A stretch of 64,000 bases of DNA, taken from NCBI RefSeq assembly GCF_963676685.1, contig NC_092356.1:40548001-40612000 (forward strand). The letters run 5' to 3'. The DNA is from Mytilus edulis (lineage: Eukaryota). Made by a program: the position numbers and the translations under genes. Positions 8,502-49,619 of this stretch are shown piece after piece. The stretch's first letter is position 1. Every line of letters begins with the position of its first letter. A model generated the notes under the pieces. That model saw only the letters and a list, made by a program, of their open reading frames with translations, made no database searches and was not told the DNA's origin.

Positions 8502-8606
8502 AGTAACTACAAGGCAGATCCTGGTTACTGTTGTCCACTCTGTGGTATCAATATACCTGACCTGTCAACCATACAGCATCTGAAAATGGATATCAATCTG
8601 ACATGA
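8502..8606 (+). CDS. PEX2: PEX2 terminal coding exon
   Basis: atttcag acceptor ends at 8501, phase 0; SNYKADPGYCCPLCGINIPDLSTIQHLKMDINLT-stop supplies the last CxxC of the RING begun in the previous exon. Confidence 0.85.
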   Translation, partial: SNYKADPGYCCPLCGINIPDLSTIQHLKMDINLT

Positions 8607-19872: not shown

Positions 19873-20138
19873 ACATCCCAGCTTGGGATTTTCCTTGTGA
19901 TATTCTATTTCTGATAGAATGTCAGACAGTTCGTAGAGACGTGCGTTGTCCTAGGCCTTATTCGTCAATGTAGGGAATTTGGCAAGTTTACTCATGAGAG
20001 AGGCTTCCAACATTTCTGGAGCACCATACCGCTCGTCAAGCCTCTTCCATAATCTCTGTATACCTATGGAAGGATTATTGGCGTTCGACGCTCTTATGCT
20101 AATGGCGTGTTTAGCAGACTCTGGACCGAGCCACTTGA

Positions 20139-21857
20139 TCAGTAAATCGATCTGTTCTGAGTCAGAAACTCATCAGTCACGTTCTTGAAGCTTGCTTTCC
20201 AAGTATGAAAGGATTCTGCCCGATCGTTAAAGCTTGTTAATCGGGAGAAAAGCAGGTCCTTGCGTAAGAGGAATCTAGTTATCTCTGATGTAAGGTTGAT
20301 TTGTTGCTGGTGTGCAACAGGGATCTCTTCTATTACGTCTTGTTTTTTGTGTGAAACAGGGATCTCTTCTATAACGTCCTGTTTTGTGCGTAAGACAGGG
20401 ATCGCTTCTTTAACACCCTGTTTTTGGTGTTCAGTAGGGCTCTCATCTGAAAGACCTAGTTTTTGTATGCCGGTTACTAATCCCAGATCTGGGATAAAGG
20501 TAACTTCCGGTGACTTATTATCGGAAGGCAAGACGGCAGATGTCTGTGACAGCAAGTTCGATGCCACGGATGGCATGTACGCTGGTGCTTCGTGACTCAG
20601 CTCGATCTTAACAGGAATTTGTTTTTTCTTTTGAGGTCCTGTTACTTCCTTAACAACAGTTGATACAGGAAGTTTATTGACGAAATCTTGCACACGCTGG
20701 AGCGGGTCTTCCTTTTCGTCAGGGAGATCGCTATACGTTTGGCTATCATCGTATTCCAGGATACGAGCCTCGGCTTCTGCGGCTGCAGCTTCTCTCTGTG
20801 CTTCAAGAAGGTTATATTTGGCTTTAAGCTCGGCCTTTTCCCGGCTTACTCGTGCGGCTTCTTGTTGCATTTGAGCCTTCCTGCGCATAGCTTCTTGTTC
20901 TAATTGCGTTTTTCTGTGAGAGGCCTCTTGTTCTAATTGCATTTTTCTTTGAGCGGCCTCTTGTTCTAATTGCATTTTTCTGTGAGCGGCCTCTTGTTCT
21001 AATTGCACTTTTCTGTGAGCAGCCTCCTGTTCTAGCTGAACTGTTCTCTGTGCGGCCTCATGTTTACGTTGAGCGACTTCTTGCTCCATTTCTGCCTGTT
21101 TACGACTGGCTTCCTGTTCCATTTCAGCCTTTTTGTGTGCTGCTTCCTGTTTCATCTCAGCCTTTTTGCGTGCTGCTTCCTGTTCCATTTCATTTTGTCT
21201 GAACAGGGCTTGTTCTTCTAACATTGCTTCCTGTTGTAGGATAAGGGCATGTTTTTCGACAAATGCTATCTTAGACTTTGAAGCCTCTGCCTTGGCTCGC
21301 TTTCTCCGTGCCAGGCTTGACATGTCTGACACGTTAGAGCTACCGCTGTGCGAGGTTTTCTTACCCCTTGAGGTCTTTGTTTTAGTGGATTTGGCCTTTG
21401 TTAGAGCGAGGCGATGCTCGTGTAGTTTTTCCATAACTAGCTCCACTTTAGACAGACGTAAATCCAAAGAGAGTTTACATGCATCAATTTCTTTTTGACT
21501 CTCCAATGTTCGGGTCCTTTTCAGAAAGTCTAGGTATTCATCTGTGAGCCTACGATAATTATTACAGGCTTTAACAAGTTTGTCCTGGACTGTTAGGAGT
21601 TGCTGGAGATCGTTAGGAGGCGTTGTTACTTCCAATAACTGGGATTCAATGTCTGCCCAGAGAGCCTCTAGTTCCTGACAGAACTTGTCACGTTTTTCAG
21701 TGAAAGCTCCTTGTCCTTTTTCCGTGAGGTCACGTACTCGCCTAGCCTCGGGAGTTTCATCTGACTGTGATGTATTAGACGGATTTTCTAAAAGTTCAGG
21801 GACATCTCCATCTTGGGGCTGAATCTCTTCTTGTTGTTCCACATGACTGGGATCCAT
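20139..21857 (-). CDS. BEL/Pao Gag N-terminal part (frameshifted near 20170)
   Basis: 572-aa ORF with coiled-coil 11-aa repeats (EQEAAHRKMQL) and FLLRKDLL...FNDRAESFHTWKASF; the continuation (LLIKWLGPES) lies in another frame. Confidence 0.85.
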   Translation of the reverse strand: MDPSHVEQQEEIQPQDGDVPELLENPSNTSQSDETPEARRVRDLTEKGQGAFTEKRDKFCQELEALWADIESQLLEVTTPPNDLQQLLTVQDKLVKACNNYRRLTDEYLDFLKRTRTLESQKEIDACKLSLDLRLSKVELVMEKLHEHRLALTKAKSTKTKTSRGKKTSHSGSSNVSDMSSLARRKRAKAEASKSKIAFVEKHALILQQEAMLEEQALFRQNEMEQEAARKKAEMKQEAAHKKAEMEQEASRKQAEMEQEVAQRKHEAAQRTVQLEQEAAHRKVQLEQEAAHRKMQLEQEAAQRKMQLEQEASHRKTQLEQEAMRRKAQMQQEAARVSREKAELKAKYNLLEAQREAAAAEAEARILEYDDSQTYSDLPDEKEDPLQRVQDFVNKLPVSTVVKEVTGPQKKKQIPVKIELSHEAPAYMPSVASNLLSQTSAVLPSDNKSPEVTFIPDLGLVTGIQKLGLSDESPTEHQKQGVKEAIPVLRTKQDVIEEIPVSHKKQDVIEEIPVAHQQQINLTSEITRFLLRKDLLFSRLTSFNDRAESFHTWKASFKNVTDEFLTQNRSIY

Positions 21858-28729: not shown

Positions 28730-31070
28730 TGACAAAATTGATGGTATAGGTATTCTATCTAGTTCTTCCTGTAACTCGGTGAATGTGATGATTATTTGCA
28801 ACTCTAGTCCTCGACGTCATTATACATCACCTACTTTGCATGTTTTCTCTGTTAATGACTTACTGCCATTTATACAAAAGCCGTTAGGTATTTATCACAT
28901 TCAGTTTGCATTGGAAAAGATGAAAAAGAGAACAGATCTTTTCTTAAACTTACTTTTGCCAACAAAGGTCTGGATGGCGTTAACTTAGGCAACATCCTTC
29001 ATCATAATTTAATTCTGACAGTCGAAAATACCTCCTTAATTAAAGGTCAGTCTGTACCAATAATTTCTTATACCTATACCAAACCAATTGCAACTAAAAT
29101 TTTCAATTACAAACAAGTTTTGCAGGATCTCAACATTGACGACTTCAAGTCTAAACCTCAACTGTGCTAGTTCCCAATTTACACATAATCCGGCTGTCCA
29201 CGTTATTATCGGAGACCTCAAAATTATCAATAACACTTTACTGCGAAATTTGTTATCCAAAGATCCGAAATATTGTGAGCCTAAATCCATCAATAGGAAA
29301 TACAACTTCAAAATACTGATGGATTCAGTCGAGGATTATGCCAGCCAATGGGCTAAACGCGAGAAAGAAGACGTAGATACTCTTTCCGAATGAATTAATG
29401 CTGTGAGGTCGTTGATACAAATCCGAATTAAGAAACTAAATGAGTCTATCAATACCCACACTTCGCCAATTTTTAAAGACCCTAATGTTGCAAAACACTT
29501 GTCCTACCTCCATGACAAATATGTGGTTGTCCCCGCAGATAACCCCCAAATAACATCGTTTTTGTGTGTAAATATCATTACTTATCTGCTTGATAAATGA
29601 AATAGGTATTGACAATTCACTTGGAAACTCAACATCTACCCTCACGACACTTGCCAAAGAGGAAATCCTGGATGATCACAGGTCTTTTCTATGTTCCTTT
29701 GGAATTTCAAGTAAAGATGAAGAACTGGATCTTCCATCACTGTATTGGATACATAAACTACATAAGTGTCCTTACAAACAACGGTATAATGCTGGGTCTT
29801 CCAAGTGGCCCAAAAAACCTCTTTCTAAAATACTAACATCTATTTTATCAGCAATCAAAGCCGGGCTCCAAAGTTACTGTGAAATTGCCTATTCTAGAGG
29901 TGGCTTGAATCAGATGTGGGTACAAAAAAATTTCCAAAGATCTTTTAGAGTACATACAATCTAAGACTCTCTCATCTTACCATAGTATTAAAACATTTGA
30001 CTTTTCTACACTATACACAAGTATTCCCCATTCCAAACTAAAATACAAATTGAAAGAGTTGGTATAACTTTGTTTTATTATAAAGAATGGCGAACGTCGA
30101 TACAAGTGTCTTGTCTTGGGGAAGTATAAATCCTACTTTGTAAAAAATCACTCCGATTCAAAAAAAATAAATCTCTGAAACTGACATTATCAAGATGCTT
30201 GTTTTCTTGATTGACAACATATTTGTTACGTTTGGAGGACCTGTTTGTCAACAGACTGTCGGAATTCCAATGGGAACCGATTGTGCCCCTCTTCTTGCCG
30301 ACTTGTTTCGTTATTATTATGTGGCTGACTTCATACAGGAACTTCTTTGGAAGAAAGATAAGAAGTTAGCGGTATCCTTTAACTTTTACCTTCCGCTATA
30401 TAGATGATGTTCTCTCACTAAATAATACACAATTCGGTGACTACTAGTATGTTGAACGAATCTATCCTATCGAACTGGAGATAATAGATACAACAGATAC
30501 TGTTAAGTCTGCATCATATCTTGACTTACATCTAGAAATTGATAATGAGGGTCGGTTGAAAACAAAACTTTACGACAAAAGAGATGATTTCAGCTTTCCA
30601 ATAGTGAACTTTCCATTTCTATGTAGCAACATTCCAGCAGCGCTTGCAAACGGAGTACATACTGAACGATATTCCCGGGTTTGTATTTCATAAATTTTAC
30701 GGACGCATTTTGAGTCGATTAACCGTTACGGAATAACTGTTTCATAAATGATATCGGATATGTTCCTTATGTCGTAACTACAATACCCTTCCCTTTTCAT
30801 GAATGTGACCTACCGAATTAGACTATTTACCGGATTTGTAATTACATAAGCAACAGGAAGGGTTCCACATGTAGAGCAAGATCTGCTCACCCTTCCGGAG
30901 CACATGAGATCACCCCTAGTTTTGGTGGGTTGTGTGTTGCTTAGTCTTTAGTTTTCTATGTTGTGTTTTTTGTACTATTATTTGTCTGTTTGTCTTTTCA
31001 TTTTTAGCTATGGCAGTTTATTTTCAATTTATGAGTGTGACTCTCCATCTGGTATCGTTATTCCCTCTTC
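28730..31070 (+). mobile_element. 5'-truncated, decayed Penelope-like retroelement (RT, probably Naiad/Chlamys type) with 3' tail
   Basis: Across frames: PKYCEP, VVVPAD, LPSLYWIHKLHKCPYK, NQMW..KN, FDFSTLYTSIPH, QTVGIPMGTDCAPLLADLF, YIDD, SYLDLHLEID, LYDKRDDFSFPIVNFPF; multiple stops and frameshifts. 5' boundary approximate. Confidence 0.85.
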
Positions 31071-31225
31071 TACATATCAATACTAATTGAAGTAATCATT
31101 TGAGGAGCAATATAATAAAACAAGTATTACACTTCGTGAGCAGTATGTAAACACTCTGAAATATGATATTTCTACTTTTTATTACGTATCTGATTTATTA
31201 AAAAGAAGCGTACAATACTGTATGA

Positions 31226-32335
31226 TTATATAGAAAAAATAGAGTCACAATACTCAAGTGCATTCAAAATTGATTGATCCATATTAAAATATTTATAACT
31301 GGCTAGTCGTCCTACAAAATGTATATTTCTCTCCTTCTCTGCTAATGTTTTGTATTGTTCATACAGTTCCATATTTCTTTTGTTTGGAACAGGATAGTAG
31401 GGATCACCGTCGCTACATGTTGTCTCTGAGATAATCGTGGTGTGTGGCGAATCTTGATTAAGGAGATGTTTGTATTCTATTATCCTGGTAAATGGAGTTT
31501 CGGGACCTAGATGATTAACGTGAGCACATGGCTGGAAGAATTTAGTATTCTTCAAGCGTTGAATTTCAAAGTTTACGGATCGATACTCTAATTTGGGGTA
31601 ACCAACATTTGTGAAGAAATCATCAATAGGTCCAGAATATATAATGGTACTGTTGGAAATAGCAGAAGGATCCATGTCAAAATAGTCGCATGACAGGCGT
31701 ACTGTTATATTCTCATGGTCCAGAATGTTTTCGAAAAATTTTGTATAACCATCAGTAGGAAGTGCTTGATATTTGTCACTGAAGTAACGGTCATCGAAAT
31801 TATTTCTTACTGGTATTCTAGCTAACACTGATGCATCCAATTCCTCTGGGTACCTCCCCCATTGTTTTAATGTATAATGCTTAAATATTTTTTCATACAA
31901 GGTTTCACCTACCCTTGACGTGGCCATTTGATACCCATTATCAATATGTTCATGCTTCAATTGGTTTCGGGACAACCAGTCATCTGCTTCTTGTTTATTT
32001 GTTAAATGCTGTCCACATAACATATTAATTGTTGTTATGTTGGGTGGCAATGGTATGTATTGTCCATCAATTACCCCTAGGACTTTGTGTTCCCATCTTG
32101 TCCAGCTAGAAAAACGATTTACGTATTGCCATACTCTTTCGCTATTTGTATGAAACAAATGGACTCCATATTTATTAATTCTTATTCCGTTTTCATCGAT
32201 GTAATCATAGCAGTTCCCGCCAATGTGATCTCTTTTGTCTACAATCAGAACTTTCTTATGTCTTTCTTCAGCCATAAATCTGGCCATGACTGCCCCTGAA
32301 AGACCACACCCGACAACCAAATAGTCTGCCGACAT
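31226..32335 (-). CDS. glf: UDP-galactopyranose mutase, bacterial Glf-type flavoenzyme, 369 aa, CDS uninterrupted
   Basis: GCGLSG FAD-binding motif, RDHIGGNCYD, KYGxHLFHT, YTxKQWG, RIPVR..FDDRYFxDxYQALPxDGYT, LEYRS, FTRIIEYKH, PYYPVP, GRLASYKYFNMDQ. Acc-ATG start; AATAAA signals ~30-50 nt after the stop. Confidence 0.95.
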   Translation of the reverse strand: MSADYLVVGCGLSGAVMARFMAEERHKKVLIVDKRDHIGGNCYDYIDENGIRINKYGVHLFHTNSERVWQYVNRFSSWTRWEHKVLGVIDGQYIPLPPNITTINMLCGQHLTNKQEADDWLSRNQLKHEHIDNGYQMATSRVGETLYEKIFKHYTLKQWGRYPEELDASVLARIPVRNNFDDRYFSDKYQALPTDGYTKFFENILDHENITVRLSCDYFDMDPSAISNSTIIYSGPIDDFFTNVGYPKLEYRSVNFEIQRLKNTKFFQPCAHVNHLGPETPFTRIIEYKHLLNQDSPHTTIISETTCSDGDPYYPVPNKRNMELYEQYKTLAEKERNIHFVGRLASYKYFNMDQSILNALEYCDSIFSI

Positions 32336-32389
32336 GGTATTGACGTATCAGTTTCAAAATTGTATGACAATTATGATCAGCTTACATCC

Positions 32390-32410
32390 GCTGTAAAACA
32401 AATTTAGACT
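32390..32410 (-). promoter_or_regulatory. Candidate 3' splice acceptor of a 5'-UTR intron of glf
   Basis: Minus strand gtctaaatttgttttacAG|cggatg, 55 nt upstream of the ATG. The paralog has gtctaaatttgttttgcAG|tggata at 49579-49600, and similarity between the copies ends ~35 nt upstream of the AG. Confidence 0.6.
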
Positions 32411-32899
32411 TACAATAATACATTCTTCTTATTTTTAAATTTTTTAATACAATTAACGATGGCATACAAGTTAAAGTAGGTTTTTTTTAGGAATACTCTA
32501 TATCTTAATCTTAATTTCAAACCCGAAACAAAATTAGAGAAATAGTTTGAAAAAAATGTATTTACAAACAATGATCCTGATGTATCATGGCAAGAAAAAG
32601 AAGGTACCCAATAATATGATACAATTACCAAACATACAACACATGTTTGCGAAATAATATTAATCAGGCAAACTCGTTTACCTGAATTTAGAAATCCTAA
32701 ACCCCCAAAATATTATTAAAATTCAACAAGCACGCCCCTTCTTAGTTACGTTAATCTAATTGCAACTTTTGTATATTGGTTACCGTGGTTTTTTGTTGTT
32801 TATTTTTTTTTTTTGCTCAGTCATAATGTATTGGCATTATGTTTTGTACTATGTTGTTTGTTTGGGTAGTTTGTTTTGTTTTGACAAGGTATTGAAAGG

Positions 32900-33186
32900 G
32901 AGACGAAAGATGCTAGAGGGACAGTCAAACTCAAAAATTGAAAATAAACTGACAACGACATGGCTAAAAATTAATAAAAAAAAAAAAACAGACAAATAAT
33001 AGTACAGAAGACAACATAGAAAACTAAAGACTAAACAACACGAACCCCATCAAAAACGGGGGGGGGGGGGTGATGTCAGGTGTTTCGGAGGGGTAAGCAG
33101 ATCCTGGTACACACGTCGTGTTGCTTTTTATTAAAAATCCAGTAAATAGTCCAATTCAGTAGGTAACATTCGTGAAAAAGGAAGGG
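32900..33186 (-). mobile_element. Isolated 3' tail of the Penelope-like family
   Basis: Reverse complement of 30785-31070; another minus-strand copy at ~47140-47500. Confidence 0.8.
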
Positions 33187-33510
33187 TGAAAAAGACAGTA
33201 TGCAATAAAATTATATTTTACATTATCCATGTGGTCTTATACAAGTGTTTTGTGAGTTTATTTACAACCACTGGGTCGATGCCACTGCTGGTGGAATATG
33301 TATTCCCTGGGAGTATAACTAGCCTCAGTAGTCAGCACTTCTATGTTGTCATGAATTATCATCGTGTTTTGAAATACTAAGAGTTTTCTACCTTAGTGCT
33401 ACCTCAGGAATAGATAACATTAGCTGTATCTGACAAAACTTTTAGGACGTTTTGGTCTTCAATGCCCCTCAACTTTGTACTTTATTAGGCCTTTAACATT
33501 TTGATTCCCT

Positions 33511-33552
33511 GGTCACTGATGAGTCTTTTGAAGAGGAAACGCGCGTCTGGCG
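33511..33552 (+). ncRNA. Degenerate minimal type I hammerhead ribozyme motif within a short interspersed repeat (~33260-33590)
   Basis: gtca-CTGATGA-gtct-tttga-agag-GAAAC-gcgc-GTC-tggc. Core boxes intact; the core-proximal G-C pair of stem II is mutated to G-G. Confidence 0.7.
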
Positions 33553-36500
33553 CAAATATATAATTTTAATCCTGGTATCTATGATTAGATCATTGTTACG
33601 ACCTTGGACTTGACCGCATTTAATGAAAAAAAAATGCAAAAAACAGATTACCTAATACTTTTGATATGGTTTTTTTTATAATAGATGCAGAGCTTTTCAG
33701 AAACAACGTATCGTTTGTATTATGTACCATAATGTATTTACAATTTAATAAACGATATTTTGAAAATTTATTTCGATTGATTTTGTTTCACTACGTTAAC
33801 GTGTGTCATGTTTCTAAAATTAATTTCACAAACACATTGTGTAAGAGTTTCAAAATTATATACCCAATCAAACAATGACAATTAGGCGAACACGCGTAAT
33901 ATTTTCAGTATGTGCTGGACAAAATTTATTTTATGGACGAAAGAGGACATCACTTTTTTACTCGGGTCAAACATCTGTTGTTTTTTAAACTTTATACAAG
34001 AAGAGCTTTTACTTTCCAATAAAATACTGCAAGTTCAAGGTTAGGGGTCCCGTTAACATGTTAACCCCACCATATTCTCTATGTATGTGCCTGTCCCAAG
34101 TCAGGAGCCTCTAAGTCAGTGGTTGTCGTTTGTTGCTGTGTTATATATTTGTTTTCGATCATTTTTGTACATTGATAAAACGGTATGTTTTCTCGTTTGA
34201 ATTGTTTTACACTTGTGAATTGAGAGACTTTTATAGCTTACTATGCAGTATGTGCTTTGCTTATTATTTATTGCTATAAGGTGAAATATAGCTGTTAATT
34301 TCTGTGTCATTTAGCCTCTTGTGGGGTGTTGTCTCGATGGCAATCATACCACCATTTTTTTTATGTATGTTCTGAAACCAAAATATTTTCAAATTATAAA
34401 TCTCATTATATTAATTCATCATTCACTCATTTTAAAAGAAATTTTCTTTATGTATTTACTTCAAATCTGAAATAGATTTTTGTGTTCATACACTTTCAAT
34501 CAGACATTATTTAATGCAATGTCAAAAACAACAGATAATTAGTCAGCACCAACAGAAAAAACTTACACATGTTACAGTCGACATAATGTTATACTTTAGA
34601 CTGAGGTGATTCAAAAGATAAAAAAATTTATAAGATTTTTAAATGAGATAACTATAAGTAATGTACATGTATATTTAACTCAGAGATATAAGGAATTGTC
34701 TCAGACCTGAATACTAATTGAAGTTTCCGTTGTACCCTACTGAAAATGAGATTTCTTAATTATATAGTAATACTTACCTAGATGATAGTTTTCCTCTTTT
34801 GTGTACGTGGACATCACTTGATATTGATGTAGAAAACACGACAGGTTGTGCATCCATTAAAGACATATGTTTGATAAAAAAAAGTTGTTTCAAAATATAT
34901 ATATGAATAATGTAGCGTTTATTCTCATCAGTAATAAATAAAGAGTTATCATAGAATTTTAAAAGTTTTAATGGTTGGCTTATTATACTAAAAAAGGCAC
35001 GACGATAATGAAGCGATCAAACCCCATGAGACGAAGAAAACATACTCACTTTAAATAAAATACTACTTATTTCGTACAATTTTATTTTAGGAGTTCAGAA
35101 AAAAATATTTTTTTAAAATAATTATTCGGTTGACCATTCGTTTTAAATAATTAGAAAAATGTTCAAACACATGGCGTATTTAGAAAAACGCTTCTAATTA
35201 TCCATCCAAAATCTGATATCAACACAAGCTCATTGGTAAGTGAGACATTTTAAAATGTCATTTTTAAAAACATATTTTACAGATATATGTAACGATTATC
35301 ATTGATAACCTCACCCAGTCGCATTAATATAAACCTCGCAAAGATATTCGTACAGTATTTAAGATGAATAGACGATATCTGTTAGTATTTATCGATACGT
35401 TAGTATACCAAACTACTTTACAACATAGATCGTCAACACAAATACAGACGTGTATACAATTTATGAAACTGATTGCAAAACCATTAATGATATAGAACGT
35501 TAACAAAATCATCGAGTTTGCAGTCTGACTGTCATGTTTTGTTTTTTGTATTTTTTTTTTAGAAATAAAATTGAGAATGGAAATGGGGAATGTGTCAAAG
35601 TGACAACAACCCGACCTTAGAATATATTAATTCTTTGTAGATGTTTTTTTTTTTTTTACTTTTGTTCATATGTTAATTTATTCTATTTTTTTTTCTTTCC
35701 ACTTTATTTCGGAGACTTCTTTTAACAGTATAGACTGTCCCTGTTTATTCTAAGGAAGTTCAAGGAAAAAGTACTTTAAATTGCTAATAATTAAAACATA
35801 TATACTAGTAGCTAAATATTTGTAATGTGTTGCACTCATTTAACATCGACTATTACTAGTTCATCTTAATTTTCATGATATACCATTTAATAACCTTTGG
35901 GTTTTTTTCTTCTTTTTATGTGTGCATTTAAATGTATTTATTCCCATATCTCATGTTTTGCACTAATGTTTTTTTTATCTAATGTTGAATAGAAATGTAT
36001 TCTTTGTTCTATTACAAATACTGCACAAAAGTAGAATCATGTATCTTGAATTTTGAATATTTAATTATGTTTTTCATGTATAATTAAGAAGCGGAAATGG
36101 TTTAAGCAAACAAATGGAAATTAAAGGCAACAGTAGCATACCGCTTTTCAATAGTCACAAATCGATTCGGCTAGCTCATTTAAAAGTCTATGATTATCGT
36201 TCTGCTGCTACTATGAGACATAATTTCAAATTACAGTATACATGGTAAACAAAAAATACCGAATAACAATGTAAAACGTCTAAGCATGCATGCCAAACAA
36301 ATATTTACACCTTAGTATCATTCCATACACCAAATATAGTAGTCTTATCGTGAACAGTACCTGAGAAACAGATCAAACCATAGCAACTCAGCACTGAACA
36401 TTGGACCATGAAACTGAGGTTATATTCTCATGAGCCCTTGAAGATAGATATGTACACCCATACACCAAATATAGTTGACCCATTACTTATAGTATCTCAT

Positions 36501-38077
36501 AAACTGACAACAAAAAACGAACACTGAATAGACCAACGACCTTCTAGTAAATGATCATTAAATACACGAAATAGTGACAACTTTGCTTACAATGTCTGAT
36601 GAAAAAAAACAAAACCACATAATTTTAGCATTGTCTAATGAACCCTCAAGTTGAAATAAAGGTCAGATGTTACCAGCCAGTCAGATATGTACACGTTATT
36701 CCATAAACCAAATGTAGTTGACCTGATGCGTGTAGTATTGGAGATACTGACCTGACCATACAACTTTAACCTTTAACCTCAGCTGAACCCAACATGACGG
36801 ATTTGTAGATGTTGCTACAAATCCATTGTAAGTCAGTGTTTCACTCCACCAAAGAAACAGAATTTTTGTTCAAGCATCCACTGAACCATAAAAATGAGGT
36901 CCAGGAGAATGAAAATATGACTGACGGAAACTTCGTTACATAAGGTTTCTGTTTATAAATTAAGAAGCATCCGGACAAAGCTTTTTACAAATAATATACG
37001 CCATTGCTGATGATGGACTGTAATACTTATGTCTGACAGTCTGTGGTTCAAATTGGTTACAAGTAAGAAGAAAAGTGTCCATTTTACTAATTATACACAG
37101 GTTGTTTCAAATTTCATTCATGCACGTACACAAAAGGATTTAAAATCTACAATTTTAAAGCCCGTTATCCATTGGGTACAAACTCGAAGATTTTAATTTG
37201 GGCAGGTGGTGGTTCACTGTTGGGTATTTAACATTTGTGTTGATTAGTTTGATCGCAACCTCGCTTTGGTCTTTTCGAAATACGTCGGCAAGATTGCAGC
37301 AGACGAAAATTGGACGAGAAAATAATCTTCTTAAAAAAGTTGAAATAACACCTGAAATAGGTTTGATAAAGGGCTATAAGTTTATTTTGATATACGATAA
37401 AGACGGATTGATATCGATTTAATCCCGATGTCTTGAAATTTTAGTTAAAAACGACATTTAAAAACATACAAAAATTTAATGTGCAAATGAATGTCGAATT
37501 TAAGTAAACGGTCACAGCCAAAAATAAATCAAACCAAGATTGTGTTAGACATTATATTTTTATGCAATTTGAAAATGTGAAGGAATTTATAACTGTTATT
37601 GCCGTACTTTAGTGATATAAAGGGTTTTCAAATCAACCAAATATTTTCACAATGCAATTTTGAAATAGCTTATTGTCAGCATATAAATTGATGCAGTCGA
37701 TAACTTAGTTCATCTAAATACAGGACAAAAATGAGCAAAAAGTTGAGTGTTTCGACTCTATTTATTGACAAACTTGTAATGACAAACTTCCGGTTAACGG
37801 TGGGCATAAAAACCGAAACCGGCTTTGATAAACTCGTATGTTTCGGATTTGCACAAATGGCAAAACAATCATTTTAGTAAGTAGTAATTGATTCTTAGTT
37901 TATATATCCTGAGAATAACACGAAAGAGCAAACTATAGGCATATAATCGGAGAGAGATTTGTGAAATACGTATGTTTTTGGATATTCACTTTTAATATTT
38001 TATATATATATATATATAAGGTAAAGCACATGTATTTATTTGAATGAAGATAACACATACACTTTAAGTTTCAGATC

Positions 38078-40744
38078 ATGTATAGGAGGTCCGGCAGAAA
38101 AAGGGTGCCGACAAGCAGGGCAAATAATGGAGGCGCAGCGGCTGCTGCAAAGAAGTCGAAACAGCAACAGGAAGAGGCGACTGCTAATATTGCAGATAGA
38201 TTACCTAGGAATTTACCTAGAACAAGTGGAACACCACCTGTACAGCTCGGCTCAAACACAGTGACAACTAATGTACTACCACACAGTCCAATAATGATCC
38301 CAGCAACACTGCCAGCAGAAACAATTTACCCTTCTCCAGGTAATACAACATTACACCAACCCCTAATTAACACAGGTTATGCCTTACCCATTGAAACGGT
38401 TAAGGCGTCAGATGACATAGAGCGAAACGTATCGCAAAATGTCAAACAAAAAGTAATAAATGGGGAATATGTAGATATGGGCAGTTTGTTAAATAATTCA
38501 CAAAACATAACAGGAGTGAATCAAACACTTACATTTAATCAGGGACAGATTATATTACAACCTAAGCAACAGGATACAAGAATTAACACAATAGGTATAT
38601 GGACGGATGCCTTTTTAATATATATCAGTATTTATTGTACTATACATACATCTCAGTTCCAAGAACTGTTGAAGTATATGCAAACTGTCAGGTTAGGGGC
38701 TAAACGCTATGCAGGTTTAGGATGGAAATTGTATGATGAACAGTTTAGACTACGTAGATCACAGGAGCCTGCTGGATCCTGGTCTGTCATAGACACTGAG
38801 CTATGGTTATTGTATATGCAACCAGCAGGTCCAATTAATGGGCCAGAGTTCAATATTGCACAAAAACCAACAAACAATTTTCTTAAATGCTATGCATATA
38901 ATTATAATGGGACGTGCACCCAACAATATTGCACATACAAACATGCTTGTTTAAAATGCAGTGGGGTACATCCGGTTATATATTGCACTAATAGCAAAGT
39001 GACTAACTCTAATAATCCTCAGTCACCTGGGATTGTTCAGAGATTCAGATCAGCCCGGCCTCAAGCACCACAAAAACAGCATCTAATTTTCAACCCTTTG
39101 CTCCTAGGCAAATGCAAAATAACACAAGATTCCGTTCTCCTGGAGCATTTATGGGACAAAGGCAAAACCCCAGTCAAAATTAAATCTTTAAGAGAATTAC
39201 TGTCAAATTATGAAAACAAAACTGATGCAGCAATGTTATTATTGGGATTTATAGAGGGGTTTAGATTAAACTATACTGGTCCAAGGATCTCGAGTTTTGC
39301 AAGCAATCTCATTTCGGCAGAAGTTCACAAAACTGAAACAAATTTAAAATTACAAAAAGAAGTGCATCTGGGTAGAATGTTGGGCCCCTTTTCAAAAATA
39401 CCTATTTCAACTTTAAGAATATCTCCTATTGGGGTAGTTTCAAAAAATGACGGTGGATGGCGTCTTATAACTCACTTGTCATATCCTCTAAACTGGAGTG
39501 TGAATGATTTCATTGATCCAGAAATTTGTAAAGTAAAGTATTCTTCTTTTGATAAAGTGGTTGGGATGATCTCTGAATTAGGAAATAACGTGCTTTGCGC
39601 AAAAATGGACATTAGTCAGGCCTTTAGAATTTTATTGGTTCACCCAGCTGATTTTGACCTTCTGGGAATTTTCTTTGATGGGAAATATTATATTAATAAA
39701 TGTCTGCCTGAAGGCTGTTCTATATCATGTGCCCTCTTTGAAAAATTTGCCACTTTTTTGCATAAAACAGTTGCATTGAAAGCTGGCATTGAGACTTTAG
39801 ACCACTATTTGGATGACTTTTTCTTTGCTGGTGAAAGTTCAACGGATAATTGTACCATTTTGATGGACACTTTTAATGAAGTATGTAGGCAGCTAGGTGT
39901 TCCACTAGCAGAGAATAAAACAGTAGGTCCTACCACATGTATCACATTTTTAGGCCTTGAAATTGACACAGTACTTATGTTGGTTAGAATCCCCCCTGAA
40001 AAACTGGATAAACTTAAATTTATGCTTGATCAGGTCTTGTCGAAAAAGAAAATGGCACTGAAGGAACTTGAATCAATTACTGGTTTAATGGCATTTTGTT
40101 CAAGGGCTATTATATCAGCCCGTGCTTTTATTCGTCGTTTTTACGATTTGATAGCTTCAGTTAAGAATGGAAAGCCTTATTATACTGTCAGATTGAATTC
40201 AGAGGTCAAAGCAGATGCTAGAGTTTGGCTAAATTTTCTAGATCAATTCAATGGTCAGTGTTATTTTCCTGATAGATTTTGGTCGACTAATGAAAGTCTG
40301 GAATTATTCACTGATAGTGTAGGTAATGTTTTATTAGGTCACTGGGTACAATACCAGTGGCCAAGTAGTTGGGCTGATACTAGCATTTTATTGGATATAA
40401 CATGTTTGGAGCTTATTCCCATCGTGCTGTCGTTCATGATATGGGGTCGTTCATTTAGAAATAAAAAGATTCTGTTGAGAATAGATAATCAGGCATTAGT
40501 AAGCATTGTGAACAAAAGAACATCAAAATCAAAGAGAGTTATGATATTGATAAGACAACTAGTTTTTCTCACTAGCAATAACATACAATTTAGGGCACAA
40601 CATATTGAGGGTGAGCATAATGCAATCGCAGATGCTCTTTCTCGATTTCAGGAACAACGTTTTATGGACTTGGTCCCGAATGCAGACAGTTCTCCAGCAG
40701 CAATCCCACAAGAATTCCTGTCGATGATTTCAGAACTGAAATGA
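38078..40744 (+). CDS. Ngaro Gag + reverse transcriptase/RNase H (one 888-aa frame in this copy)
   Basis: GWKLYDEQFR and a Cys/His finger (Gag); ISPIGVV.K, RLITHLSYP, KMDISQAFR, HYLDDFFF (RT); FTDS, LEL, IDN, NAIADALSR (RNase H). Confidence 0.93.
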   Translation: MYRRSGRKRVPTSRANNGGAAAAAKKSKQQQEEATANIADRLPRNLPRTSGTPPVQLGSNTVTTNVLPHSPIMIPATLPAETIYPSPGNTTLHQPLINTGYALPIETVKASDDIERNVSQNVKQKVINGEYVDMGSLLNNSQNITGVNQTLTFNQGQIILQPKQQDTRINTIGIWTDAFLIYISIYCTIHTSQFQELLKYMQTVRLGAKRYAGLGWKLYDEQFRLRRSQEPAGSWSVIDTELWLLYMQPAGPINGPEFNIAQKPTNNFLKCYAYNYNGTCTQQYCTYKHACLKCSGVHPVIYCTNSKVTNSNNPQSPGIVQRFRSARPQAPQKQHLIFNPLLLGKCKITQDSVLLEHLWDKGKTPVKIKSLRELLSNYENKTDAAMLLLGFIEGFRLNYTGPRISSFASNLISAEVHKTETNLKLQKEVHLGRMLGPFSKIPISTLRISPIGVVSKNDGGWRLITHLSYPLNWSVNDFIDPEICKVKYSSFDKVVGMISELGNNVLCAKMDISQAFRILLVHPADFDLLGIFFDGKYYINKCLPEGCSISCALFEKFATFLHKTVALKAGIETLDHYLDDFFFAGESSTDNCTILMDTFNEVCRQLGVPLAENKTVGPTTCITFLGLEIDTVLMLVRIPPEKLDKLKFMLDQVLSKKKMALKELESITGLMAFCSRAIISARAFIRRFYDLIASVKNGKPYYTVRLNSEVKADARVWLNFLDQFNGQCYFPDRFWSTNESLELFTDSVGNVLLGHWVQYQWPSSWADTSILLDITCLELIPIVLSFMIWGRSFRNKKILLRIDNQALVSIVNKRTSKSKRVMILIRQLVFLTSNNIQFRAQHIEGEHNAIADALSRFQEQRFMDLVPNADSSPAAIPQEFLSMISELK

Positions 40745-41625
40745 ATCATTTACTTATAAATTCATTAGCACCCAGTACACAGAAAGCATATTTGCATAGC
40801 ATGGACATATTTGTTAAATTCAGAGAAAATCATGGTTTTTCTGATGTCTGGCCTATTCCGCTTGATGACTTGACATCATTCATTGTTTATATGTTTAGAA
40901 AGAAATTGTCCCACTCAACAGTATCTGGCTATATTTCAGGCTTAAGTTACTTTAATAAAATCAACAATTTAGAAGACAATACACAGAAATTTGTTGTCAG
41001 AAAATTGATTGAAGGAATAAAAAGGTTGGGGGGCCCAAATCAAAAGGACACTAGATTACCCATAACGAGAGATATATTGGAAAAATTATTGAGGTCACTG
41101 GCGGTGATTTGCAAAAACGGGTATGAGACAAAACTGTTTATGGCTTCATTTTCGCTAGCCTTTCATGGTTTTATGAGAGTAGGTGAAATAACAGTTGATT
41201 GTAAAAATAAGCAGATGCATACTGTAAAATTTGAAAATATAAAGCTTTGTGATGCAAGATTAGAGGTTTTATTGACGTCATCTAAAACTGATCAGTTTGG
41301 TTCTGGAACAACAATGGTTATTTCTAAGCAGAAAAACAAAAATGTATGTCCAGTACAAATAATGGCTAATTTTATTAAAGTTCGCCCACCTTATCTGGGA
41401 CCTTTATTTTGTCATTTTGATGGATCCCTCCTTACAAGATACCAGTTTTCAGCATTATTAAAAAGGTCTCTGTCAGTAATTGGTATAGAAAACAATGGAT
41501 TTAAGTCCCATTCCTTAAGAATTGGCATGGCAACTACATGCGCATTAGAAGGTATTTCTGATGAACAAATTAAAGAAATGGGACGTTGGAAGTCACAGGC
41601 CTTTTTGCGTTACATTAGGATTTAA
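40741..41625 (+). CDS. Tyrosine recombinase
   Basis: Intact R-K-HxxR-W-Y set: FMRVGE, SKTDQ, SHSLRIG, GRWKSQAFLRYIR; ATGA overlap with the RT stop. Confidence 0.95.
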   Translation: MNHLLINSLAPSTQKAYLHSMDIFVKFRENHGFSDVWPIPLDDLTSFIVYMFRKKLSHSTVSGYISGLSYFNKINNLEDNTQKFVVRKLIEGIKRLGGPNQKDTRLPITRDILEKLLRSLAVICKNGYETKLFMASFSLAFHGFMRVGEITVDCKNKQMHTVKFENIKLCDARLEVLLTSSKTDQFGSGTTMVISKQKNKNVCPVQIMANFIKVRPPYLGPLFCHFDGSLLTRYQFSALLKRSLSVIGIENNGFKSHSLRIGMATTCALEGISDEQIKEMGRWKSQAFLRYIRI

Positions 41626-42396: not shown

Positions 42397-45300
42397 ATAC
42401 AACTGTTATGTTAACATTTTATATCTGACGTTTCAAGTAAGTTACTAGGAAGTAACTTGAAAGTTAATATATTAAACTGTATTTGGCACAGCTTCGCGCA
42501 GCTACACCCCCTCTTTTCAGTGGCGGTTGTCCAATCAGATCAAGTTGTTACCCTGATCTTATCGGACAATTTGGCACATTTCGCTGCGCTGGATTTAACA
42601 TTCATATATTCAGTGAACAGTAATGATAGCCTCTGATTACCAGGGCTCATCAGTCAACTTCTCGTACCAGACATATTACTTAAATATATTTATATTAGTG
42701 GTCTGCCATAATTTGCGGTAGCCACATTATAATTTACATATATATTAAATACAGACATTGATAAATATATTTCAGAGCAAGATTGCCAATTTAAATACAT
42801 ATTATATATCATATATGTTATATTTTATTCAAGATAAAGCTGTGGCCAAATACTGCCAAAACCTTATTATCTATTTGTTATGTTTTGGGCCTCGAGGATA
42901 AAAGGATTTAAAATCTACAATTTTAAAGCCCGTTATCCATTGGGTACAAACTCGAAGATTTTAATTTGGGCAGGTGGTGGTTCACTGTTGGGTATTTAAC
43001 ATTTGTGTTGATTAGTTTGATCGCAACCTCGCTTTGGTCTTTTCGAAATACGTCGGCAAGATTGCAGCAGACGAAAATTGGACGAGAAAATAATCTTCTT
43101 AAAAAACCCACCACCCTCCCAATGTAAATTAATTTTGTGTTACATGTGTATTTGTTCTGAATGGAAGTAAGAAACCAGATACTGCTTTTAAGTTTATATT
43201 TCAGCTTATTTCTGCTAATGGTACTGAGATGGGAGAGAAGGAGACAACTAGTGAACACAATGTAGATGTAAAAGTGGACATTGGCAGAGCACATTTGGCA
43301 CATTTCGCTGCGCTGGATTTAACATTCATATATTCAGTGAACAGTAGTGATAGCCTCTGATTACCAGGGCTCATCAGTCAACTTCTCGTACCAGACATAT
43401 TACTTAAATATATTTATATTAGTGGTCTGCCATAATTTGCGGTAGCCACATTATAATTTACATATATATTAAATACAGACATTGATAAATATATTTCAGA
43501 GCAAGATTGCCAATTTAAATACATATTATATATCATATATGTTATATTTTATTCAAGATAAAGCTGTGGCCAAATACTGCCAAAACCTTATTATCTATTT
43601 GTTATGTTTTGGGCCTCGAGGATAATCATGAGATACTGATGAAACACTCCCATAATTCTTGTCATCTGCTCGAGTTCAGAATTCTATAACATTTTAAAAA
43701 CTTAATCTGAACGACCTGCATGTTACATGGCTTAATCTTAACTATGAGTATCCCATTCCACCATCAAAAACCTTGCTAAAATGAGCATCTATTGGACTGT
43801 ACTGGATGTATACATATGCAGCTAAAACATCAAGATGTGAACTTTTTATCTGATTGCATTATTTCGGAATAGAGCAAGTTGTAACATGTGTAAGTTATAA
43901 GAACCATTGCAACAACTCCAGTCAGTATATTGAGCAATGATGTAAATATTATTTAGTTTGGATCAATTTGTATTGTGGCTTGTATAGGATGAATGAAAAA
44001 AATAAGATATATTGCTGTAAGTTGGGTTGAATAATGAATATTTGTTTTCATGAGAATACTTAAAACATTTGAAACAGGACAATGACCTTGTAAGTTAAAA
44101 AAATGCAGGTTTCAAGTTGAAACAATAATTTTTGAGAATACTTTGAAATATATTCATTTATACCTAAATACTTTTACGCCGTTACTCAAATTTAAGGATA
44201 AATCATTATAGCGTTAGCAATATTGGTTGAGCCTGCGTTTGAAGGTCATTCTGTCCATCACAATTGATGTGTGGTAACCTTCTCTTAAAGTTTTTTTTTA
44301 TATACTTACAATCGACTGGACATGTTATTTTTCAACAAATTCCTTACTTTTAGTTACTTCTTTAATATTCTCTAATGCTTTAATCGCTTTATCAAGCATA
44401 AAGTAACACGTTTCTAATGTATTTGCGATATATCGTTATATACAATGCTTAAAGAAGTCATCTTTTGAACAATATTAAAAGGCTAGGAATCTATAATTCT
44501 GAATTTACATTAAAACTTCTGTGAAATAAACTAAACAATAACGAATGATGTTAATGTCAAATTTAGAGGGAGCGTGAATTTTATGTTCTACCACGGATTG
44601 TTACAATTACTCTTATACACATTTCTATTTTATACAAGTTTATTTACACATTATATGAGAGTCTTTGTTATACATGCACATGTCATTTTTTACATTTTCG
44701 CATATTAGAGTTTTCTTACGAATTGAAGAAAGGTACGTACGCTTGACGAATCATACGTAAGACTCGTTTTAGGGATCCTTTATTTTGGCATATTTAAATT
44801 ATAGTCCAGGAACTTCGGACCATTAACCTACTTGCAACGACACTTACAATGAATTTTTCTTGAGATAGAAAAAACATAAACTTCCTTGATTCAATATTTG
44901 CAACGCCCAGAATAATAAAATGAAGAAAAAAAGATGACCATCATACTATGCCATATGCTGGAGCTCGTTTAATAACTTGTGAATCATCGCCTCTCTGAGT
45001 AATATTCATTGGGCCCCTTAGTGTGTCTATATGATACACGTACCAGAGTTAGGCTCTCCTATGGAATCGTTATTTTAGCGTATAGTTGCGTTTTGCCTAC
45101 AGTCCAGAACATTCATAAAATATAAGTCACTGGACGTTCGCGTCTATCTTCCAAGCATGTGTACTGTTAGATCGTCTTTCTAAAATCCACAAGATATATG
45201 ATGCAAAATTGTAGATTTATTTTCTTCATATACCTTTAGGAGTTTAAATGTGTATGTAATTGAACAAAACGATCTACATGTATATAATTAGCTGATCTAT

Positions 45301-45880
45301 GATTAAAGCTCAAGGGCAGATTTAGGAATGATTCGCACAAGAGAACATTTACTCAACCGACACATTCCTAGCCTCCAATTCTCGATCTTTTCCTCAATCT
45401 ATTAAATACAATTAAGTCAGAAAGATAGAGAGAAAGACGATTTACTTTTCCAAAACACCCAAGTTTTTTGTTTTTGCTTTGAGTGTAAGGGAACCATCAA
45501 TTCACTTCAAGAGTGTTATGCTTTTTTACTTTAAAAATATTCTGGTTCCCAATTTGACCGAAAAAAATGTTGTGGTCAAGCAGATTACAAACAAAATCTG
45601 AATCCAGATTTTCCCTTCACCTTATAGTGTTTAAATTTTGATAAAAATAATTGATTAATAGCGTCGAAAAACTAAGAAAAAAAAAACATAACCCCCTCCC
45701 CTTTTGAAGTTCAATGGTTGCTACCATAACTTTGTTTTTATTCTTTTTCACCCATTGTATACTTGTTTAATAGTGTAAACTTTGTAACGTTAATATTAAA
45801 CTAAATTTACAATTAAAGTTATGGTTTCAATGTATCCCCTGCGATCACAAGAGGTAAATTACCTTTATAACATTAATAGA

Positions 45881-46615
45881 AAACTAGATGTGTCAAAGCG
45901 ACACGAATGGCCCCGTCCCAAAAAGTTGAAAAATCTGCAATTTCAATATAAACATATGTGGACACAAACATGATGGTAGTCTCACATATGAAAAATCAGG
46001 TCAAAATCTGGAGGCGTATTTAAACAAAACACGTATAACTGTGATTTCAATAATTTATCAAAGTCCAAAGCCCGTAATTTCAGCAAATATTAGCGGAGCG
46101 GAACGAAACTTAAAATTGACATGTAACGCATCATTGTTAACTCACATCCGCCCAATATCTGAAGGCATTTAGAAAAAACCCGTATAACTGTGATTTTCAT
46201 CTATTTCTCATAGTCCAAAGCCCGTAATTTCGGCAAAAAATAGTAGAGCGGAACGAAACCTAAACTTGATCTGTAACTCTGTAAAAAAAAATCAGCCCAA
46301 TATCTGAAGGCGTTTAGAAAAAAGTCCGAATAATTGTGATTTTCAACAATTTCTCAAAGCCCAAAGCCAGTAATTTTGTCAAAAACTAGTGGAGCGGAAC
46401 GAAACTTAAACTTGATCTGTAACTCATCATGGTTAACTTGCATACCAAAAATCAGCCCAATATCTGAAGGCGTTTAGAAAAAAAACTGCGTATAATGGTT
46501 TTTTGCGGAATGACGGAATGACAGAATAACGGAATTACGGAATTACTGAATTTCGGAATTTTGGACAAGGGTAAAACTATATGGCACCGACAACTTCGTT
46601 GCGGGGACATTAAAA
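45881..46615 (-). mobile_element. HINE-type element with ~150-bp internal tandem units
   Basis: Minus strand: tttaatgtccccg...(ccgt/attccg microsatellite)...three units (agtccaaagcccgtaatttc at ~46062, 46212, 46359 on +)...cggggcca, hairpin gtgtc-gcttt-gacac, ctagtt. Confidence 0.8.
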
Positions 46616-48413
46616 CTTGATCACAAAATCTGTTTTTCTAGATTTATTTCACATTACTTTTTCAAAATCTGTTTTTCTAGATTGATTTTACATTACTTTT
46701 TCAAAACTTTGCAACATCGTTGTTTTGCAAATCTCGATATTCCAAGTTGACAATTTGCTGATAGTGTACCATAAAAAATAAAATAAATTATAATCTTTGC
46801 CTTTTAATCTAGACTAACGTACTTCAACTATGCCATTAAAATTTTAATCGTGAAACTCGTGCTTAAACAAATCTCGCGGAAATGTGTGTACTCATGGTTC
46901 ACGTAAGTAACGTGTCGGGCGTAAGTATATTTGACACTATTTTTCTTTATTTTCTAATATATAAAAACGTGTATTATTTGCGATATGCTTATTTTTGAAA
47001 GATAAATTTGATTTAGAAAAGAATGCTGTTTTACCGGATAAAACAGAGACTCTAACTTGTTATTTCGGAAATGTAATACGTGTTCCCTTTACGTTCGTTC
47101 GTACCTTTCGTCAATTTGTAAGAAAGCTCTATTGATTCTAATAAAAGAGGCGAAAGATACCAGAGGGACTTTCAAACTCGGGTGGTATATGGTGCTCTGG
47201 AAGGGTAAGCAATCACTTTCTCACGTGTGGCACCCGTCGTGTAGTTCGTGTCAGTACAAACTCGGTAAATAGTCGAATACGGTAAGTCACATTCGTGAAA
47301 AGGGAACGGGATTGTAATAACGACATCAGATACACTCGATATCATATGTTGAACGGTTATTCGATAACAGTTAACCAACTCAAACTTACGAGGGGGTGTG
47401 TCAACTTCATCATTTGGAACTCTTGGTTTAATGGCTCCGTTGTGAGCAGTAACCCTCTATCATGGAAATCATTATAGGAAACACAACCCCAGGAATATCG
47501 AAGACAGGTTAGACATAACAACTGATTAGTTACACTGCTTTGTTATGTTTATTAGAGATCTTTTTTATATATTTATTCTACTTGATCATATGAAATACAA
47601 GTCATGACACTGTGAATACACCAATGGTAATGATAACTAAAAGTGTTTATAAAAGAAATTAGAAAATCAAAACCAAATCATCGAAGATGTATTGTGCAAG
47701 ATTTATAAACGTGTCATTCACAACTTTCACATATGATATGCATATCGTTTTCTTTAAAATCGAACGATACTTCAAATATTCGAGGCAGTTAATAAAATCG
47801 AATTTTATCATAAATGCCAAACACACTATTTGTGAATGTTTTAATGGGTATTGAACTACAAAAGACACCATTATAACAATTTTGCGGTCTTAAATTAACC
47901 CGCATCAGACAATTACACTAGCTCCTTCTTTTCTAAGCTGCCTGTTTCAGGAAAAATCTTACTGCACACAAATGTGTAGTATATAAATGTTACTCGATGC
48001 CGCTTAACTGGTTTTCCATTCAATCTGAAATTTGACATTCTAAACATTAGTGCCAATATATCATTATGGCATCCATTTCTATTTGGGGAGTGGTGGGGTT
48101 GACATACCAGTATCGTTTGGATATTTGTCAATCGAGAAGACCGTATGTACAGTCTTTCTTGTCATTGTATTTCGGTCTGGTTTCCTAATACTGCTCAAAT
48201 ATCCCCTCAAATGTACCAAAATAATTCATGATTACTATTACTGTCACCATTGATACTACATATCAATAAAAATGAGGTAAATTTGCATTTGAGGAGCAAT
48301 ATAATAAGAAAGGTATTACACATCGTAAGCAGTATTTTAACATTCTGAAATATAATATTTCTACTTTTTATTGGCATCTGATTTATTAAAAAGCAGAGTA
48401 TAATGTTGTATTG

Positions 48414-49524
48414 TTATATAGAAAAATTAGAGTCACAATACTCAAGTGCATTCAAAATTGATTGATCCATATTGAAATATTTATAACTGGCAAGTCGTCC
48501 AACAAAATGTATATTTCTCTCTTTCTCTGTCAATGCTTTATATTGTTTAAACAGTTCCATATTTCTTTTGTTTGGAACAGGATAGTAGGGATCACCGTCG
48601 CTACATGTTGTCTCTGAGATAATCGTGGTGTGTGGCGAATCTTGATTGAGGAGATGTTTGTATTCTATTATCCTGGTAAATGCAGTTTCGGGACCCGGAT
48701 GATTAACGGCAGCACATGGCTGGAAGAATTTAATATTCTTCAAAAGTTGAATTTCAAAGTTTACGGATCTATACTCTAATTTGGGATAGCCAACATTTGT
48801 GAAGAAATCATCAATAGGACCAGAATATATAATGGTACTGTTCGAAATAGCAGAGGGATCAATGTCAAAATAGTCACATGACAGGCGTACTGTTATATTT
48901 TCATGGTCAAGGATGTTTTCGAAAACTTTTTGTATAACCATCAGTAGGAAGTGCTTGATATTTGTCACTGAAGTAACGGTCATCGAAATTATTTCTTACT
49001 GGTATTTTACCTAACACTGATGCATCCAATTCCTCTGGGTACCTCTCCCATTGTTTAAATGTATAATGCTTAAATATTTTTTCATACAAGTTTTCACCTA
49101 CCCTTGACGTGGCCATTTGATATCCATTATCAATATGTCCATGCTTCAATTGGTTTCGGGACAACCAGTCATCTGCTTCTTGTTGATTTGTTAAATGCTG
49201 TCCACATAACATATTAATAGTTGTTATGTTGGGTGGCAATGGTATGTATTGTCCATCAATTACCCCTAACACTTTGTGTTCCCATCTTGTCCAGCTGGAA
49301 AAACGATTTACGTATTGCCATATTCTTTCGCGATTTGTATGAAACAAATGTGCTCCATATTTATTAATTATTATTCCGTTTTCATCGATGTAATCATAGC
49401 AGTTTCCACCTACGTGATCTCTTTTGTCTACGATCAGAACCTTCTTATTTCTTTCTTCAGCCATAAATCTGGCCATGACTGCCCCTGAAAGACCACACCC
49501 GACAACCAAATAGTCTGTCTACAT
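48414..49524 (-). pseudogene. glf: UDP-galactopyranose mutase pseudogene (paralog of 31226-32335)
   Basis: Colinear with the intact copy (~27 aa differences by my count). Codon 2 is TAG (TCG in the intact copy), there is a +1 frameshift at ~48925-48931, and QWG>QWE and ARIP>GKIP alter conserved sites. Confidence 0.92.
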
Positions 49525-49619
49525 GGTATTGACGTATTAGTTTCAAAATGTTATGACTCTTATGATCAGCTTATATCCACTGCAAAACAAATTTAGACAT
49601 ACAACAATACATTCGGGGT

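Follow-up and report, generated by a model that had tools for sequence, protein, structure and literature searches.

A prokaryote-type UDP-galactopyranose mutase gene family, probably acquired by horizontal transfer, on a chromosome of the mussel Mytilus edulis

The bacterial UDP-galactopyranose mutases (UGMs, encoded by glf) with solved structures, such as those of Deinococcus radiodurans (3HDQ), Escherichia coli (1I8T) and Klebsiella pneumoniae (2BI7), are proteins of about 370 amino acids (aa) with a three-domain fold, an FAD motif and substrate-binding arginine, tyrosine and tryptophan residues. The eukaryotic-type UGMs of Aspergillus fumigatus, Trypanosoma cruzi and Caenorhabditis elegans (GLF-1) carry out the same reaction from a distant part of the fold superfamily, with extra inserts and solved chains of 465-513 aa. 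Outside bacteria the ~370-aa form has further relatives in giant viruses (metagenome-assembled genomes (MAGs) of Nucleocytoviricota in IMG/VR), of similar length and in many cases fused with, or next to, domains of putative glycosyltransferases, and in three named species of chlorarachniophytes (Bigelowiella, Lotharella and Amorphochlora), where N-terminal extensions bring the proteins to 417-438 aa. As to animals, a recent study (PMC13390645, Genome Biol Evol 2026) has the domain in only six metazoan species, three of them Mytilus, with the others including Ciona, an ostracod and echinoderm hits; the two Ciona genes, KY21.Chr5.483 and KY21.Chr14.742, have the bacterial-type domain IPR004379 in a single coding exon and were read there as horizontal transfers. 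The gene considered here, glf copy A, lies on the minus strand of a 64,000-nucleotide (nt) stretch (the window, C13:40548001-40612000) of a 75,045,669-bp chromosome scaffold, C13, of the mussel Mytilus edulis. Like the Ciona genes it has the bacterial-type domain and a single coding exon in an animal, and like them it invites a reading as a horizontal transfer.

Copy A is an ATG-to-TAA open reading frame (ORF) of 369 aa with no internal stop. A reading of the DNA made from sequence alone (below, the sequence-only reading) had picked it out as an intact glf of the prokaryotic class with all the motifs expected of it, and this has been borne out. The protein matches the Pfam families GLF (PF03275; 1.3e-73) and, as a Rossmann fold, NAD_binding_8 (9.5e-18), and it scores 364.4 bits over residues 4-366 against the NCBIfam equivalog TIGR00031, for which the curated cut-off is 303.75 bits. 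Its closest solved structure is that of the D. radiodurans enzyme (8.8e-101), followed by those of E. coli, Klebsiella, Corynebacterium and Mycobacterium, and identity to the three bacterial proteins introduced above is 41-44%. An alignment of 34 relatives served to build an AlphaFold model (predicted local distance difference test, pLDDT, 91.2), which superposes on 3HDQ and 3MJ4 with template-modelling (TM) scores of 0.92-0.95 and a root-mean-square deviation of about 2 Å (the Deinococcus UGM giving 0.94), and over the bacterial Glf structures compared the range is 0.87-0.95. The FAD/UDP-galactose site of the D. radiodurans enzyme we take to be formed by Y179, T180, W184, R198, Y209, R305, Y335, R364, Y370, N372 and D374. 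When these eleven residues are carried over through the 3HDQ alignment copy A holds every one (Y154, T155, W159, R173, Y184, R284, Y314, R343, Y349, N351 and D353), the majority being invariant among the 34 relatives. Invariant too are H59 and the three glycines of the GxGxxG motif, which reads G9-C-G11-L-S-G14.

Two other assignments were considered. In mutases that accept UDP-GalNAc, of the Campylobacter jejuni UNGM type, arginines replace UGM-type residues at the sugar C2 pocket; the representative structure, 4MO2, resembles copy A less than UGMs do (36% versus 43% identity). The eukaryotic-type class is ruled out by the length of 369 aa, by identity of only 13-18% to the mussel protein and by target-normalized TM scores of 0.55-0.63 for the fungal and trypanosomal enzymes against the copy A model. 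Taken together the profile, site-residue and fold matches make copy A a well-preserved member of the prokaryote-type class, by family an intact UGM and a putative catalyst.

Where the mussel gene is unlike bacterial glf is in its setting and structure: it is in an animal chromosome, has a spliced 5′ untranslated region (UTR), belongs to no polysaccharide operon and is segmentally duplicated. The description of it as intronless stands for the coding sequence (CDS), which is uninterrupted, but not for the gene as a whole, since a GT-AG spliceosomal intron of 2,387 nt separates a non-coding 5′ exon from the coding exon (Table 1). The evidence for splicing is a contig of run X1 in which 34866-34778 is followed directly by 32389-32059, the acceptor being some 55 nt upstream of the ATG; the contig reaches 53 nt further upstream than the 5′ exon as mapped. 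In every genomic glf copy the intron sequence is present upstream of the acceptor, so that the joined contig has to come from RNA and not from a DNA retrocopy. The 5′ exon, donor and acceptor are conserved across the paralogues, broken ones included, and the copies at 40.773 and 40.800 Mb match the exon at 100% identity. Within it is a short upstream ORF which terminates ahead of the main ATG; splicing hence adds neither an N-terminal extension nor a signal peptide to the protein. The AATAAA signals earlier noted behind the stop are there, at 31199-31194 and 31183-31178, 27-48 nt past the stop codon. The base composition is host-like, as had also been claimed from the sequence: the CDS has a GC content of 0.368, and 0.327 at third codon positions (GC3), with flanks at 0.31-0.34, and its CpG observed/expected ratio is 0.67 versus 0.63 for the window.

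Nor is copy A a solitary gene. A six-frame search of the whole 1.37-Gb genome gave nine glf copies, all at 40.58-40.83 Mb of C13, the window containing one besides copy A (copy B, broken, at 48417-49524) and the other seven lying within 250 kb; four of the nine are intact and five broken. A search of the genome with the GLF profile revealed no further GLF domain. There is, as a matter separate from the cluster, a faint glf-like fragment of about 90 residues, with stops and 56-67% identity, at C11:62404739-62405003. The copies spread through segmental duplication of retrotransposon-rich host DNA, and among the four intact paralogues dS is 0.03-0.13 and dN/dS 0.14-0.36, which points to purifying selection since duplication. 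Three copies retain all the active-site residues together with the splice sites. A fourth, at 40.759 Mb, has R173K, a change in the essential mobile-loop arginine, and a protein of M. galloprovincialis (P0001) has Y349C at a substrate-binding tyrosine; both substitutions may mark the beginning of a functional loss. The M. galloprovincialis proteins group with different M. edulis paralogues and the M. coruscus protein falls outside them, from which it follows that at least one duplication is older than the edulis/galloprovincialis split and that acquisition is older than the divergence of M. coruscus.

How widely is such a gene found? Orthologues spread broadly across invertebrates would have suggested vertical descent, and none came to light: of the 5.8 billion proteins searched, those that exceed 63% identity and have a named source all belong to M. 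galloprovincialis, M. edulis or M. coruscus. Intact 369-aa orthologues are present in all three species, those of M. galloprovincialis on a 74-Mb scaffold, and near-identical sequence occurs in runs from 15 studies under five organism labels. The presence of the gene in Mytilus is known already, both through a passing mention in PMC13390645 and through RefSeq and UniProt, where entries from the three species are labelled UDP-galactopyranose mutase, UDP-galactopyranose mutase-like or glf (XP_071145156 to XP_071145164, for instance, being 'UDP-galactopyranose mutase-like [Mytilus edulis]'). In the literature searched we found no description of the nine-copy tandem family, of the 5′ UTR intron or of purifying selection, and none of the giant-virus and chlorarachniophyte neighbourhood, or of the sister clusters, to which we now turn.

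Closest to the Mytilus proteins are two environmental clusters, P0002 (75% identity, 28 members from JGI, ENA and Logan) and P0004 (70% identity, its members all from Logan and its contigs some 1.6 kb long), the nearest relatives of P0004 being P0002 and Mytilus. In a careful maximum-likelihood (ML) tree of 59 rows, the Ciona and ostracod proteins not being among them, Mytilus, P0002 and P0004 form a clade with 100/100 support and a long stem. The contigs of the two clusters were not found in the genome, metagenome and viral contig collections, where the best matches were at 60-63%; ESM Atlas look-alikes of P0002 are in mixed viral and bacterial clusters. All relatives beyond P0002 and P0004 are 56-63% identical: chlorarachniophytes (61-62%), many giant-virus MAG contigs of GC content 0.19-0.49 (56-60% by tblastn), Bacteroidales and Pseudomonadales. 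For two of the viral contigs the flanks were inspected as well, and these resemble those of nucleocytoplasmic large DNA viruses (NCLDV), with an Rpb3/11-like subunit and many ORFans. In the best tree the sister of the Mytilus clade is the chlorarachniophytes, with support of 74/63, which is not significant, and since giant-virus, chlorarachniophyte and Bacteroidales enzymes branch from the backbone as a polytomy the donor is not narrowed. The neighbourhood, of which giant-virus sequences make up the bulk, leans toward the virus- or protist-associated part of the family. The BLASTP comparison and ML phylogeny once proposed as checks have thereby placed the Mytilus clade among giant-virus, chlorarachniophyte and bacterial sequences. 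The 120 best relatives found for the Mytilus protein do not include those of Ciona, which makes an independent acquisition in that animal likely. The two cases differ also in that the two Ciona genes are clearly expressed in blood cells (PMC13390645), and for the nine Mytilus copies the evidence of expression is weak.

That glf is a horizontally acquired gene of prokaryote or giant-virus type, now resident as a nuclear gene family in Mytilus, is in our judgement quite probable. Acquisition as such is well supported by the microbe-type family, the embedding in a mussel chromosome, the confinement of close named orthologues to Mytilus, the intron and the host-like composition, and so that part of the original proposal (acquisition from a bacterium, alga or giant virus) stands, with the choice among the three donors left as wide as before. 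A sceptic might begin with the assembly, for a prokaryote- or virus-type protein with an intronless CDS is just what a co-sequenced bacterium, alga or virus would contribute to a contaminated or chimeric contig. Such a source has, however, next to no chance of accounting for nine copies that lie, along with retrotransposons, in duplicated host segments of a 75-Mb scaffold, for the composition and spliceosomal intron of a host gene, and for the same genes in independent assemblies of three Mytilus species and in the runs of 15 studies; contamination, and with it the chimeric contig that the sequence-only reading had named as a possible undoing of its proposal, is effectively refuted. That the gene is an old metazoan one, which Mytilus retained and nearly all other animals lost, could be argued from the occurrence of the same domain in Ciona, an ostracod and the echinoderm hits (PMC13390645). 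It would require very many independent losses, would leave the position of the Mytilus clade among viral, algal and bacterial sequences to be explained, and has to contend with the lack of any named non-Mytilus animal above 63% identity in the proteins searched; we regard it as very improbable.

The two remaining alternatives accept the transfer. One would have a bacterium as direct donor, for example a mussel-associated member of the Bacteroidota, with no giant-virus or protist route. Relatives in Bacteroidales and Pseudomonadales at 56-60% identity, an approximately unbiased (AU) test that does not reject Bacteroidales as the sister of Mytilus (p-AU 0.31) and the longest contig of P0002, which at 751 kb would suit a bacterial genome, all speak for it, while among 185,579 species-representative prokaryote genomes nothing is closer than 60%, the Flavobacteria-type clade is set apart with 100/100 support, the majority of the sequences around the Mytilus clade are from giant-virus MAG contigs and the best-tree sister is chlorarachniophyte. 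A direct bacterial donor is thus possible, if somewhat doubtful. The other alternative is that the transfer was real and the family is a fading relic without function, its intact copies merely not yet having been hit. The five broken copies, R173K and Y349C, and the near absence of reads in three RNA-seq runs (below) favour this reading; the dN/dS values, the persistence of intact 369-aa orthologues in three species, the three copies with splice sites and every active-site residue in place, and the existence of a spliced transcript speak against it, and we consider it unlikely.

Several observations nonetheless weigh against the picture of an acquired gene in working order, and are best set out together. 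Besides one spliced glf contig, run X1 has two further glf contigs, and the spliced one has a T as the first base of exon 2 together with a 2-nt insertion; these match the copy at 40.800 Mb and not copy A, so that the transcript seen is that of a paralogue. In three raw RNA-seq runs with the same species label, sampled at 1.2-1.8 billion letters per run, depth on the CDS is close to zero. With five of the nine copies broken and R173K in one of the intact ones, the family may be partly decaying. Searches of flanking ORFs and for the domain DUF3431 (for which see below) found no galactofuranose (Galf) transferase, UDP-Galf transporter or co-transferred gene, and DUF3431 itself was not detected in the mussel genome, a weak negative given that control genomes were without signal too. 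No report of Galf in Mytilus glycans was met with in the literature searched, and the published N-glycans of M. edulis, as cited in two reviews, are without it. Finally, if the P0002 and P0004 clusters were to prove to be from animals, the transfer would be older and its taxonomic range wider. A lack of expression had been envisaged as counting against the proposal, and on that the outcome is divided between the existence of the spliced paralogue contig and the near-zero depth in the three runs: the family is transcribed and spliced on evidence that is weak and comes from a paralogue, with expression low or restricted. Pile-ups of RNA-seq reads at 33253-33585 and 35525-35721, in or just upstream of the glf intron and with a depth of up to about 300 at 35.5-35.7 kb, are another matter, as many of the reads pass into dissimilar sequence or have 'goes back 286' joints and so are transcripts of dispersed repeats and not of glf.

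The question of what the enzyme might be for leads to its viral relatives. In giant-virus UGM relatives there is repeated fusion or adjacency with DUF3431 (PF11913), PF03407 (GT77-like), PF05704 and GT90 modules, which from this association are candidate galactofuranosyl-transferases; the mussel glf, for its part, stands alone in this respect. The mussel genome has nine single-exon matches to PF03407, among them C6:84273460, C6:84237101, C6:23602641 and C13:48495364. Linked transfer of such a transferase with glf was considered and set aside, the mussel copies being only 19% identical to the virus-fused domain. The genome search for Galf transferases that the sequence-only reading had suggested has, then, with DUF3431 silent in mussel and control genomes alike, not furnished a partner for the mutase. 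From an intact and constrained enzyme we infer, reasonably we believe, a Galf pathway in the mussel, and do not present it as a finding. What the sequence-only reading offered as new is so in part: the genes were annotated in three Mytilus species and PMC13390645 lists the genus, and it is on Galf in Mytilus that the literature searched has nothing. The fuller proposition, that Mytilus makes Galf glycoconjugates by means of a UGM family that was taken over from a giant virus, or from the protist which it infects, and later amplified in tandem, is put forward only tentatively.

The course of events that we would envisage starts with a single transfer of glf without neighbouring genes. A comparison of 2,928 ORFs flanking microbial and viral glf with the mussel region gave only a LINE endonuclease and one chance hit, in keeping with the earlier statement that no operon neighbours are present; by this comparison glf would have come in alone or any accompanying genes have been lost later. 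The source would be the lineage today represented by the P0002 and P0004 clusters, with giant-virus, chlorarachniophyte and Bacteroidales enzymes as the wider neighbourhood of that donor lineage, and the transfer would have taken place while M. coruscus and the M. edulis complex still shared an ancestor. Later the gene would have gained its non-coding 5′ exon and spliceosomal intron, and its base composition would have drifted to that of the host, with segmental duplication giving rise to nine copies on one chromosome, of which the four intact ones would be under purifying selection. The product, being a 369-aa protein without signal peptide, is predicted to be a cytosolic flavoenzyme. With reduced FAD the mussel enzyme would interconvert UDP-galactopyranose and UDP-galactofuranose, and may so supply the Galf donor to one or another of the mussel's glycoconjugates, confined to a particular tissue, stage or condition.

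The surroundings of the gene in the window are animal DNA. The spliced PEX2 that had been placed about 23 kb from glf is there, as RING-finger exon ORFs on the plus strand at 4085-4372 and 8382-8606, with a Pex2_Pex12 domain 2-3.7 kb to the left of the window start (C13:40544321-40546003), so that PEX2 starts outside the window. The eukaryotic transposons remarked on as surroundings of the gene can be named as a Pao/BEL and a DIRS-like element, each with long open frames. Beyond the 21-nt satellite lie related arrays, of period 101-164 nt, up to about 62.2 kb. The ORFs listed over the 30-nt and 58-nt arrays are artefacts of the repeats.

Table 1. Features of the glf locus and of its surroundings, other glf copies, and giant-virus or metagenome loci with UGM fusions or neighbours. 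Positions are those of the window unless given on C13 or on a contig (L).
Feature	Position	Strand	Remarks
Copy A CDS, single coding exon	31226..32335	-	ORF; Pfam/NCBIfam/PDB matches; site residues; AlphaFold model
5′ UTR part of coding exon, 55 nt	32336..32390	-	adjoins acceptor ttgttttacAG/C; joint in run X1 contig
GT-AG spliceosomal intron in 5′ UTR, 2,387 nt	32391..34777	-	run X1 contig; donor AG/GTAAGT at 34778/34777
Non-coding 5′ exon, minimum extent	34778..34866	-	run X1 contig
Two AATAAA hexamers, candidate poly(A) signals	31178..31199	-	read from sequence
glf copy A	C13 40.579 Mb		intact; no breaks
glf copy	C13 40.759 Mb (40759373-40760479)		intact; R173K, essential mobile-loop arginine
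glf copy	C13 40.773 Mb		intact; no breaks
glf copy	C13 40.800 Mb		intact; no breaks
glf copy B, pseudogene	48417..49524; C13 40.596 Mb	-	94.8% identical to copy A; TAG at codon 2; 1-nt insertion after nt 593
glf copy	C13 40.691 Mb		broken pseudogene; 5′-truncated, three stops
glf copy	C13 40.785 Mb		broken; 1-nt insertion after nt 442
glf copy	C13 40.815 Mb		broken; 1-nt insertion after nt 442, as in 40.785-Mb copy
glf copy	C13 40.826 Mb		broken; 2-nt insertion after nt 442; TAG at codon 357
Segmental-duplication unit with copy A	28889..37133		recurs at C13:40.770 and 40.795 Mb, 91-96% identity (blastn)
Segmental-duplication unit with copy B	43647..49614		recurs three times, at C13:40.78, 40.81 and 40.82 Mb, 95-96%
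Pao/BEL LTR retrotransposon	15336-21857	-	domains Peptidase_A17, integrase, DUF5641; long open frames
DIRS-like element	38078-41625	+	domains reverse transcriptase and tyrosine recombinase; long open frames
21-nt satellite, about 196 copies	56047-60145		extreme strand bias, GC skew about -0.7
Tandem array, 30-nt x48	10033-11456
Tandem array, 58-nt x15	12413-13284
Loci with UGM fused or adjacent to DUF3431, or fused to PF03407, PF05704 or GT90, giant virus/metagenome	L115:274-3156; L207:8748-12692; L105:1273-2973; L228:11145-12104

Galactofuranose is immunogenic and a drug target in pathogens, and to our knowledge it is absent from vertebrates. If a mussel does produce it with an enzyme captured from a microbe, molluscs would have their first Galf pathway and the known mollusc glycan repertoire would widen, in animals that are food species and biomonitors and in which byssus, mucus and shell matrices are of interest to materials research; with a giant virus or its host as donor, sugar metabolism would also have been passed to an animal by way of a virus. 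For the UGM family at large, the giant-virus fusions with DUF3431 and GT77-like domains point to testable candidate galactofuranosyl-transferases. The locus is, besides, a clean case of a foreign gene turning into a host gene, with 5′ exon and intron, amelioration, tandem amplification and partial decay all on view in one family.

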